From Macrostomum lignano (Eukaryota), in the NCBI GenBank assembly GCA_002269645.1, contig NIVC01003374.1, positions 37,282 through 101,281 on the forward strand: a DNA stretch of 64,000 nucleotides, written 5' to 3'. This document shows positions 37,884 through 40,800 of this stretch, piece after piece. The notes below the pieces were generated by a model. It was not told the DNA's origin. It did no database searches and was given only the letters and a program-made list of their open reading frames with translations. Made by a program: the position numbers and the translations under genes. Within the stretch, counting starts at the first letter, position 1; each line of letters opens with the position of its first letter.

Positions 37884-40800
37884 ATGCTGCACCACCAGCT
37901 GCTCTCCTCGACGACTGACTTCGGCAGCAGCAGCTTCACTCAGCTGATGACGCTGCTGCTGGCGCCCGCTGTGTGGACCTGCCTGCTGGCGCCCTGTGTC
38001 TTGATCAGCGAACTGGGAGCCGACACGCAGCAGCTGAGGTGAGCGAGAGCACCTTTGCTTTGCCTAATTATCTAAGAATTCAGAGCAGAGCAGACACTCC
38101 ATAGACACTTCACCTTCATCTGTCAACCGTGCAATTCCGCAGAATCGGCAACAACAATGACACAATGCGAGAATTCATTGCAAAAATGTTTGAAAACTAC
38201 GACAAAACCATCCCTCCGTCGATGTACACTGGTGAGTGAAACTCAGAGGAGCGTTTTCTAGCAAAAGTTATGGAAATTAAGAATTTTAAAAATGAATTTA
38301 AAGGAGCGTAACTAATAAATTTACATTTCAATTGACTTTTGCCGATGAAAACCGAATCGATTGCTCATGTTTTTCATCATGTCGCTCAACCCACTGCAAC
38401 ACGCGCGATACTATAATATTTCAGTTTGTTTATCATTGCAACAATTTGTGACAAAAATTGCGAGAAAATAAATGGAAGACAAATTTTCAATTTGCGTGAA
38501 GCTGTCTGGCTCTGAAGTACTTTTGTGAGTCCACTGGCCCATGGTAGCCTAGAATTTGATATCCAGAGTGCAAAACTATTCAACCCAGAAACTGTTGTAG
38601 CAATTTTATGCAGATTTGACGCTGCCTTTCAAATCTTTGGCGGCATTTTAGTCCCCGACACATCCGCTGCCTCGCACCGAACTCAGGCTCAGAACTCAGG
38701 CTCAAGTGGAATATGCAGGATTTACAGGCATCGGAGTCTCGCTTTTAGTAATATTTTGTGAGAAACAGAATTGTTAAGCCACGAATCTGACTAGCTTTTT
38801 CCAATCCAGATGCCTTTATCTAGGGCTCCATGACCTGTTCTCGTTTGAATTTGCTATTAGAAAACTCGTGTATCAATGGCTCACATGTGTACAGAGGATT
38901 AATAGGTACCAAGCCAACGCATGTACATTGCGCACATGCACAACATGACGTCATGCTTTCAGGCTCTGTCCTAAAGGTGTATGTGAGCGTGATGATTCAC
39001 GCTATTAGCGGTGTGAACGAGCGAACAATGGTGAGTAAAGGCAGATTTATGCCGACTTTGAATCAGTCCTTGATCCTCTAAAATAGTTGGAAAGTTCAAT
39101 CCAGAAATATGAGAATGGCATTTGCATGCCTGTGAAATATTTTGAAGGCCCTCTGTCTACCTTACCTAAAAGTACACTCAAAACATGTTAAAGTTTCCAA
39201 CCCGTAACCATAATGGCCAACAAGTGGGCAGCTTTGATTAAAATCTTGCCAAATCTAATAGCATTGTGACGCAAATTGCATCAATTCACACGGTTAAGAC
39301 AAATTACGCCATTTTGGGCTGAGCTTTGAGGAAAATGGACCTCTTGTTCCGTGGTGGAAACTTCACCATTTTGCGAGTGTTGTACATGGTAGATCTTCTT
39401 ATTCTTCTAACCTCTGTAGCTCTTGAAACTTCTGCACCATCTTACACCTTACTTAGAATAATTAGTGTGCATAATACAAATAATTCTAAACAAACTTCCG
39501 AACCATGATGGGTAGCTGCGAGCGTAGATATGAGACCTCACTTATGCATATTTCAATCTATTTAGAATATAAAATCATTGCATTTATTGCTTGCGTTTTG
39601 CAAGACAGTTATTATAGAGTGAAATCAATTTGTACTATTTAGCACGCTGGCTTTCATGTTATGCACTGAGCAAGGCTTTTGCACGTACATTTTTTAAATC
39701 AAAACTGGTGTACAACGTACAAGTTTATATATTTTTTTACGAACATCAGCTATATTAGAGATCTTCATTTGTAGACCTCACTATTGTTATTATTATTATT
39801 ATTACTAATTTAAAAAATACTCTGCTCAGGTAATACCACGATAGTTAGAGTATCACTGATGGTGCACGCCATGAGCTCCATCGATGTGATTGACATGGTA
39901 AGAAGCCGGAGGAGCGCTCACACTAGCTATCCAAAATTTTTTTTCTACTTAACATTTTGTTTAATAAGATTTCTGATTTTTGTGTAATTTGGGCGTCAGT
40001 GAGGGAACAGCGTGTGCACATTGGGGTAAGAGTCTTCGTTTTATCGATTGACTACTCTCTCTCTCTCTCTCTCTCTCTCTCTCTCAGATAGATTGGGGAT
40101 GGTTTAGGCTCATTACTAGCGTAGAATGGGATGGGCTAGACAGTGTGTACATTAAGGGGTGAGCGGTTCTATTTTTAGGTAGCACAGAGTACATCATGCC
40201 GTAAAATTGGACTTGGCCGTTCTGTTCATTTCATGGGATGCGGTGAAAATAGTGGCGTATTTTTTTCTTGCTTTTATTTACCTTTTTGAACTAACAAGAC
40301 TTTATTTCCGAGTAATTAATATTCTTAATTGTGGATCAGATTCAGACGGAACTGACAATAAATATTGTAACTGAGGCATTATACATAGACATCGCTATGA
40401 AAACAAATGAAAGCTACCAGATTATCTATTTTCGTATTTATCACACGGGTAGAAGTGGAAACACTTTGAAAAAACTTATGCAATTTGATTTTTTTCAGAA
40501 ACTACTAGAAAGATAATTATATTATTTCATAAATGTTATATCTACTTCAACACTAAGCTATGGTTTAAATTAGTGTTGCTTATAAACGAATGCAATTAAA
40601 CTTGAAAACGATTGGCCAATAGTCGGTTTGAATCAGTTAATACACAGTAAAACAAAATGCATAAAAATTACTATTAATTCTTGACAAAATCAGAGCACAC
40701 ACGCTTTGCAAAATGCAAAATCCACATCTGAAAAAGTTTCTAAAAACCTAATTTTTGTTTTCGATTTTACTAACAAAGAAGTTTTTTTTCTGTAGTGTCG

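Follow-up and report, generated by a model that had tools for sequence, protein, structure and literature searches.

A tandem pair of divergent third exons, probably used in a mutually exclusive manner, in a glycine receptor-like anion channel gene of the flatworm Macrostomum lignano

A 64,000-nucleotide (nt) stretch of the genome of the free-living flatworm Macrostomum lignano (assembly GCA_002269645.1, contig NIVC01003374.1, positions 37,282 to 101,281 of the forward strand), referred to here as the window, contains a complete gene for a Cys-loop (pentameric) ligand-gated anion channel in which the third exon is present as two tandem copies, 3A and 3B. It is confirmed that 3A and 3B are a real tandem duplication of the exon for strand beta1 and the loop between beta1 and beta2. 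Judged from its sequence, the pair shows every hallmark of mutually exclusive exons. The two exons probably function as such a pair and give rise to two subunit isoforms, a reading built on the logic of the reading frame together with the arguments for selection on both copies. An earlier interpretation of the same letters, made without database searches and called the sequence-only reading below, had described two 68-nt exons of identical phase with strong splice sites, both ending in methionine. These features, with their coordinates and translations, were exactly reproduced. Coordinates are those of the window, and the features are collected in Table 1.

The channel gene lies on the forward strand and consists of 10 exons, with introns that are all of the GT-AG type. 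With either 3A or 3B alone it has an open frame of 559 residues, in which the Pfam domains Neur_chan_LBD (1.3e-50) and Neur_chan_memb (8.7e-41) are found. Exon 5 encodes the Cys-x13-Cys loop, and exon 7 encodes VPARISLG, the PAR motif preceding M2, which is a marker of anion channels (PMC2064938). A 316-residue UniRef protein of M. lignano is 100% identical to the gene model across the region it covers, and all near-identical matches are from M. lignano. The join of exon 1 to exon 2 is confirmed by an independent M. lignano model (P0186) with 98% identity. When relatives were searched against the window with tblastn, each exon was matched, and the channel gene was the sole Cys-loop gene within the 64 kb.

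Exons 3A (ctttcag/GCTCTG...ACAATG/gtgagt, with slashes marking the boundaries) and 3B (ctgctcag/GTAATA...GACATG/gtaaga) are each 68 nt long, run from phase 1 to phase 0, follow cag/G acceptors and encode a 23-residue segment. They lie 799 nt apart, and the acceptor of 3B is preceded by the branch-like motif tactaat. The copies are identical at 9 of 23 residues and at 31 of 68 nucleotides; the remaining 37 nucleotides amount to 54% different DNA. Their pairwise likeness is by itself not significant (tblastn E of 1.3-3.8), which is the argument for regarding the second copy as an open frame that arose by chance or as an error of the assembly. A position-specific scoring matrix (PSSM) was built on the homologous 23 residues from 110 relatives, with close M. 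lignano copies left out, and was used to scan every stop-free run of 23 residues in the six frames of the 64 kb (n=43,990, mean -25.4, standard deviation 7.7). The first two ranks among the 43,990 are held by 3A (31.1 bits) and 3B (29.7 bits), approximately 7 standard deviations above the mean, and both scores are within the range of 25-51 bits of the family members that built the matrix. Rank 3, at 15.7 bits, is located at 16027-16095 inside a satellite repeat. Five intron-bearing control loci gave exactly one match each at a cut-off of 8 bits, whereas the Lineus locus at a cut-off of 5 bits gave the true exon (33.2 bits) and one minus-strand background match (8.6 bits). In the control loci, the true exon 3 is invariably flanked by ag and gt in the same phase. 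The single match per locus at the 8-bit cut-off and these conserved bounds indicate that the test is specific and that the exon boundaries are conserved across phyla. The family profile and the alignment to glycine receptor (GlyR) structures uphold the earlier assignment of both exons to strand beta1 and the beta1-beta2 loop. A chance frame or an assembly artefact has next to no prospect of being the correct explanation, as the two copies take the top two profile ranks, agree exactly in length, phase and splice sites, and differ in 54% of their DNA, which excludes a collapsed or duplicated assembly segment; the neutral-drift simulation described below also counts as a refutation.

No third copy of exon 3 and no other duplicated exon was found when both isoforms and seven relatives were searched against the window with tblastn. 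A weak exon-3-like frame at 40005-40073 (PSSM 3.9 bits, rank 8 of 43,990) lies approximately 110 nt 3' of 3B and enters a (CT)15 run. Usable splice sites are missing, and the frame is probably a product of chance rather than a decayed third copy. The satellite at 15900-16300, the source of the spurious 15.7-bit match, is of short period and contains motifs such as GATGCTTCAGGTGATGATTG.

Because 68 nt is not a whole number of codons, an early stop followed by exon junctions arises whenever both exons or neither are included. Inclusion of both leads to a stop at 39842, four codons into 3B, after 108 residues and with six exon junctions downstream. Inclusion of neither leads to a stop at 43440 after 188 residues, with three exon junctions downstream. 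The claim that both or neither would break the frame is correct on these grounds, and either exon alone restores the full-length protein. In the proposed mechanism, the donor of exon 2 would join either 3A or 3B, and the selected exon would then join exon 4. Transcripts with both or neither would be unproductive and presumably cleared by nonsense-mediated decay, and the channel subunit would be made from one-exon mRNAs only. Frame incompatibility, presumably aided by nonsense-mediated decay, would be sufficient for exclusivity at the protein level. The stop that joint inclusion creates four codons into 3B, ahead of six junctions, would also suit a different arrangement, in which one exon is constitutive and the other is mainly a “poison” exon whose co-inclusion shifts the frame and lowers expression through nonsense-mediated decay. 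Such an exon needs no protein-level conservation, yet the family pattern and the beta1 residues specific to this receptor are preserved in both copies, either of which gives the 559-residue frame when used alone; this arrangement is therefore considered highly improbable.

Two known routes to exclusive splicing are ruled out at this locus. Steric hindrance would require a shorter intron than the 799 nt that separate 3A and 3B, and U2/U12 incompatibility does not apply since all donors are of the gtgagt/gtaaga type and all acceptors are cag, i.e. U2-type. The sequence-only reading had proposed a search for docking and selector pairings in the introns. At this single locus nothing above dinucleotide shuffles was found: the best intronic RNA duplex has -31.1 kcal/mol vs. 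a mean best of -30.7 in 12 shuffles, and the inverted repeats are AT-rich and unremarkable. Competing RNA structures gain no support from this, although they may still operate here. One of the inverted repeats is a 35-nt imperfect inverted repeat in the 3A-3B intron (39174-39208 and 39346-39380), which is 77% complementary around a 137-nt loop and indistinguishable from background; it could derive from a transposon or have a structural role. NOVA proteins bind YCAY motifs. No YCAY cluster was found around 3A and 3B, and a search of the whole window against Rfam found no family.

Selection on the two copies was examined by simulating neutral drift in 40,000 copies per direction, each with 37 substitutions drawn from the intron base composition. 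Approximately one-third of the copies stayed open, and none of the 40,000 in either direction held both the frame and the observed score, with maxima of 15.6 and 21.2 bits. With 18 substitutions, 0.035% of the copies attained 29.7 bits. Since drift with the full number of substitutions never preserves frame and score together, both 3A and 3B were held under protein-level selection for most of their divergence. The G+C content of 3A (0.49) and 3B (0.46) is like that of the neighbouring exons (0.47-0.52) and unlike that of the flanking introns (0.34-0.40), and the splice contexts of both are indistinguishable from those of constitutive exons. In the M. lignano paralog P0003, which is 86% identical overall, a 3B-type exon uses the same donor to join exon 4 and is followed by DYSVNMF. 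The N-terminal 14 residues of P0003 are identical to 3B at 11 positions and to 3A at 6. The presence of a 3B-type exon in this paralog implies that the exon duplication predates the paralog split and that 3B has been conserved since, while the case for selection on 3A comes solely from the argument within the gene.

Several observations weigh against the use of both exons. Public M. lignano models of this copy contain neither exon 3. A collection of 5.8 billion proteins, searched with full-length, N-terminal alignment and N-terminal 138-residue queries, yielded no 3A-type exon in relatives; the M. lignano models returned were fragmentary, none with 3A and one paralog with the 3B type. No regulatory element was seen around the pair, given intronic pairing at the level of shuffles and the absence of a YCAY cluster, and the selection argument leaves room for a recent silencing of one copy. 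The omission of exon 3 from the public models, the 3B-only paralog model and the lack of 3A-type sequence in the searched protein databases would be expected if one exon alone were still spliced and the other were a recently silenced, not yet decayed relic of the duplication. This explanation deserves consideration but is unlikely, as both exons have intact frames, canonical cag/G acceptors and strong gtgagt/gtaaga donors, with exon-like G+C content and near-equal profile scores that drift never preserves. In addition, 3A has the canonical glutamate of the loop and 3B is kept in the paralog, and neither resembles a decaying partner. Mutually exclusive use of two maintained exons is thus the reading preferred here.

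The sequence-only reading had assigned the channel to a receptor lineage different from those with known exon 3 pairs. This is not borne out, as the closest matches are glycine receptor alpha subunits (351 bits) and the channel belongs within the broad family of GlyR and glutamate-gated chloride channels (GluCl). Among solved structures, GlyR alpha1, alpha2 and alpha3 match with 338-351 bits, followed by GABA-A beta3 (282), GlyR beta (271) and C. elegans GluCl alpha (248). Another score of 282 bits against the channel protein belongs to a chain called “GABA receptor subunit beta”, presumably insect RDL. In the databases, lophotrochozoan “glycine receptor alpha-like” proteins are nearest, with 50-56% identity. 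A neighbour-joining tree that leaves out exon 3 groups the gene with Lineus P0016 (32 of 60 bootstraps) within a five-member clade that also includes the three intronless relatives P0110, P0092 and P0021 (42 of 60); support for this placement is moderate. In loop C (43540-43570 and 44343-44370, exons 6 and 7), the channel has Arg and Tyr at the two sites that are Cys...Cys in 55 of 60 aligned relatives, and the second disulfide that characterizes the “two-Cys-loop” subunits of the GlyR-alpha/GluCl type is lacking. The second glutamate-binding Arg is found at position 37 of the C. elegans GluCl crystal structure (GluClCryst) in the nematode type and at position 93 (R135 of Aplysia) in the mollusc type (PMC4178172). 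It is absent from the flatworm channel, where 3A and 3B each have His at position 37 and the Aplysia R135 site is Ile (YFINEKEG). By these residues, the channel would be neither a nematode-type nor a mollusc-type GluCl. In both respects, the missing Cys pair of loop C and the missing second Arg, the protein is atypical.

Alignment to GlyR structures assigns exon 3 to strand beta1 and the beta1-beta2 loop, with its end one residue ahead of the DY..FLRQ.W loop-D segment. The two copies agree at positions 1, 6, 8, 9, 11, 13, 14, 16 and 23 and differ at the other 14 of the 23 residues. S9, M11, H13 and A14 are common to both copies, and each is found in ≤3% of the 110 homologs. The hydrophobic core pattern of strand beta1 is retained in both. 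The relative P0097 is the Aplysia channel GluClAc2, as its L79, Y96 and R135 agree with the published residues (PMC4178172). Exon position 13 aligns with L79 of GluClAc2, which corresponds to R37 of GluClCryst (PMC4178172); it is the residue of beta1 that sits centrally in the agonist pocket. Positions 9, 11 and 13 alternate along the strand and by inference lie on the same face of the pocket; the agonist-pocket face of beta1 thus appears to be conserved between the isoforms.

The beta1-beta2 loop of Cys-loop receptors touches the M2-M3 linker and couples binding to gating. The tip of this loop reads NERT in 3A, with the canonical Glu, vs. DVID in 3B, with Val at the Glu site and two Asp; across the homologs, position 20 is Glu in 82% and Val in 4%. 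An N-T-T sequon for N-glycosylation is present at the start of beta1 in 3B only, and 3A has no sequon. The corresponding exon of GlyR contains A52, where the spasmodic mutation A52S lowers agonist affinity, and N46, the site of N46K (Nmf11) (PMC3484359). By analogy, the isoforms would share an agonist class, and their functional difference is likely to concern gating or apparent agonist sensitivity rather than agonist identity. A further difference in assembly or glycosylation is possible.

GLRA2 belongs to the same protein family as the flatworm gene and has the same beta1/beta1-beta2 exon ending in Met before DY..FLRQ.W. Exons 3A and 3B of GLRA2 are also 68 nt long. The exon duplicated in the flatworm is indeed the one subject to alternative splicing in GLRA2, Rdl and GluCl, as the sequence-only reading had claimed (PMC6079032, PMC3484359, PMC2064938, PMC13512814). 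The tandem exons 3A and 3B of GLRA2 (glycine receptor alpha2A and alpha2B) are used mutually exclusively, with the choice regulated by NOVA1 (PMC6079032). The two GLRA2 variants differ by two residues (PMC3484359), and agonist potency is altered (PMC3484359, PMC5650660). In contrast, the flatworm pair differs at 14 of 23 residues, the conserved loop Glu included, which agrees with its earlier description as a very divergent instance. Unlike NOVA1-regulated GLRA2, the flatworm pair has no YCAY cluster. The flatworm gene and GLRA2 are not orthologs, the duplication is missing from the closest relatives of the flatworm gene, and the flatworm protein lacks the loop-C disulfide.

Insect GluCl (exons 3a/3b/3c) and Rdl (3a/3b, in some cases 3c) are similar in having tandem alternative copies of exon 3 in an anion channel, covering the residues just before loop D (PMC2064938, PMC13512814). 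Alternative exon 3 variants of Rdl affect agonist sensitivity or affinity (PMC2064938). These genes represent arthropod-specific lineages, and their two or three copies, strongly conserved among insects, differ from one another in few residues, whereas the flatworm pair comprises two highly divergent copies found so far in M. lignano only. Insect nAChR alpha6 also has mutually exclusive exons 3a and 3b in a Cys-loop receptor (PMC2064938, PMC6393475), a likeness that refers to exon number; it is a cation-selective nicotinic subunit distant from the flatworm channel. In a survey of vertebrates, arthropods and nematodes, GLRA2/GluClalpha/avr-14 is among twelve families with substitutions of tandem-duplicated exons, which were read as convergent (Copley 2004; PMC9741552). 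The flatworm pair fits this pattern and adds a fourth phylum, Platyhelminthes, which is outside that survey. A literature search found no report of such an exon pair for flatworms or Macrostomum. What is new is the phylum, the depth of divergence within the pair (14 of 23 residues vs. 2 in GLRA2) and a locus that is unannotated or mis-annotated.

The sequence-only reading had offered either an ancient switch or repeated convergence as the origin of the pair, and the relatives with a single exon 3 favor the second and disfavor the first. All six intron-bearing loci compared have one exon 3: the Lineus sister gene (L007), the relatives from Owenia (L002), Paralvinella (L005) and Capitella (L006), and a further M. 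lignano gene of the family, which is present as two near-identical genomic copies (L003 and L004). Ten lophotrochozoan genes in RefSeq, for which 2-10 isoforms each are annotated, show no isoform variants of exon 3. The residues S9, M11, H13 and A14 of 3A and 3B are absent from the four closest relatives P0016, P0110, P0092 and P0021. The single-exon relatives and these four shared rare residues point to a duplication that most likely took place in the flatworm lineage before the M. lignano paralogs diverged, and that is independent of those in vertebrates, insects and nematodes. Two points tell against such an origin. The rare residues present in both copies could stem from a constraint that acts on both and not from recent common origin, and 3B matches exon 3 of the intronless gene P0110 at 10 of 23 residues, compared with 9 of 23 for its match to 3A. 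For an exon-level phylogeny, which had been proposed, 23 residues are too few (3A-3B 9/23, 3B-P0110 10/23).

In the alternative history, the pair would be an ancient switch homologous to those of GLRA2, Rdl or GluCl, with one copy lost from the single-exon relatives. The great divergence between 3A and 3B would be in keeping with this, as would the distribution of the loop residues: 3B shares Val-20 and Asp-22 with intronless P0110, and Val-20 also with P0092 and P0021, and the closest relative, Lineus P0016, has Glu as in 3A. The intronless genes could then be retrocopies with one isoform frozen. An ancient switch is nevertheless very unlikely, as it is opposed by the single exon 3 of the Lineus sister gene, of the three annelid relatives named above and of the other M. 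lignano gene, by the ten RefSeq isoform clusters without exon-3 differences, and by the four rare residues missing from the closest relatives. The GLRA2 variants, moreover, differ by two residues only (PMC3484359), and the family is already viewed as convergent (PMC9741552). P0110, P0021 and P0092 (from ENA and Logan assemblies) are encoded by uninterrupted open reading frames with Val at the loop-Glu site, like 3B; the intronless frames are at 7927-9318 of L001, 1407-2816 of L008 and 382-1791 of L009. Single-exon genes are also known for SmGluCl-2 and SmGluCl-3 of S. mansoni (PMC3757052). The intronless relatives may be retrocopies that froze one isoform.

A broader interpretation can be put forward tentatively, and with somewhat more doubt than confidence. 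One gene may toggle between a Glu-type and a Val/Asp-type gating loop, with the pocket face of beta1 remaining fixed. Among its nearest relatives each class is hard-wired in genes or species of its own, Glu in Lineus P0016 and Val in the intronless group of P0110, P0092 and P0021. The GlyR/GluCl family would then have acquired exon-3 switching for a fourth time independently, in what would be by far its most divergent pair.

The public gene models break at the exon 3 cluster. P0186, an 83-residue “secreted protein”, corresponds to exons 1 and 2 read into the intron (..YTGE and a stop), P0001 begins in exon 4 at the Met of MFLRQ, and in the paralog model P0123 exon 2 is followed directly by exon 4, out of frame. 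The gene is thereby split into a “secreted protein” and an N-terminally truncated channel, and re-annotation is needed. Elsewhere in the gene, a 48-nt minisatellite at 41258-41997 (15.3 copies, 94% identity) occupies most of channel intron 4, and the 5.3-kb intron between exons 7 and 8 (44573-49860) contains very long short-period simple-repeat arrays with repetitive translations at approximately 47524-49700. Intronic open reading frames included nothing coding, and the repeats are the (CT)15 run and the 48-nt minisatellite. Neighbouring coding fragments are listed at the end of Table 1.

Table 1. Features of the channel gene and neighbouring coding fragments in the window.
Feature	Position	Strand	Remarks
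Exon 1	37884-38038	+	Start codon, signal peptide; gene model
Exon 2	38143-38231	+	Ends in phase 1, ACACTG/gtgagt; shared donor for 3A or 3B
Intron exon 2-3A	38232-38962	+	731 nt, G+C 0.40
Exon 3A	38963-39030	+	68 nt; PSSM 31.1 bits; G+C 0.49
Intron 3A-3B	39031-39829	+	799 nt, G+C 0.35, U2-type GT-AG
Exon 3B	39830-39897	+	68 nt; PSSM 29.7 bits; G+C 0.46
Intron 3B-exon 4	39898-40995	+	1098 nt, G+C 0.34, contains (CT)15 at 40055-40085
Exon 4	40996-41219	+	Loop D, agonist-binding Arg; shared acceptor for 3A or 3B
Exon 5	42574-42656	+	Cys-loop
Exon 6	43427-43570	+	Gene model, GT-AG introns
Exon 7	44343-44572	+	M1, PAR motif, M2
Exon 8	49861-50145	+	M3
Exon 9	51269-51670	+	M4 and stop
PMP22/claudin-like exon	30041-30499	+	Neighbouring coding fragment
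Thioredoxin-fold exon	35200-35382	+	Neighbouring coding fragment
UPF0240 family gene	62674-63147	+	Neighbouring coding fragment
PHD-finger and MULE-transposase fragments	59389-60234	-	Neighbouring coding fragments

The divergent pair provides a natural experiment, as the pocket-facing part of beta1 is fixed and the Glu of the gating loop is replaced, and it could be used to separate effects on binding from effects on coupling. If both isoforms are expressed, M. lignano would provide a flatworm case of the recurrent duplication of an exclusive exon 3 in inhibitory Cys-loop receptors, and the case for exon 3 as an evolutionary hotspot for tuning channel gating would be stronger. If the toggle between loop types is also true, it would mark the beta1-beta2 loop as the feature that selection has repeatedly made switchable.

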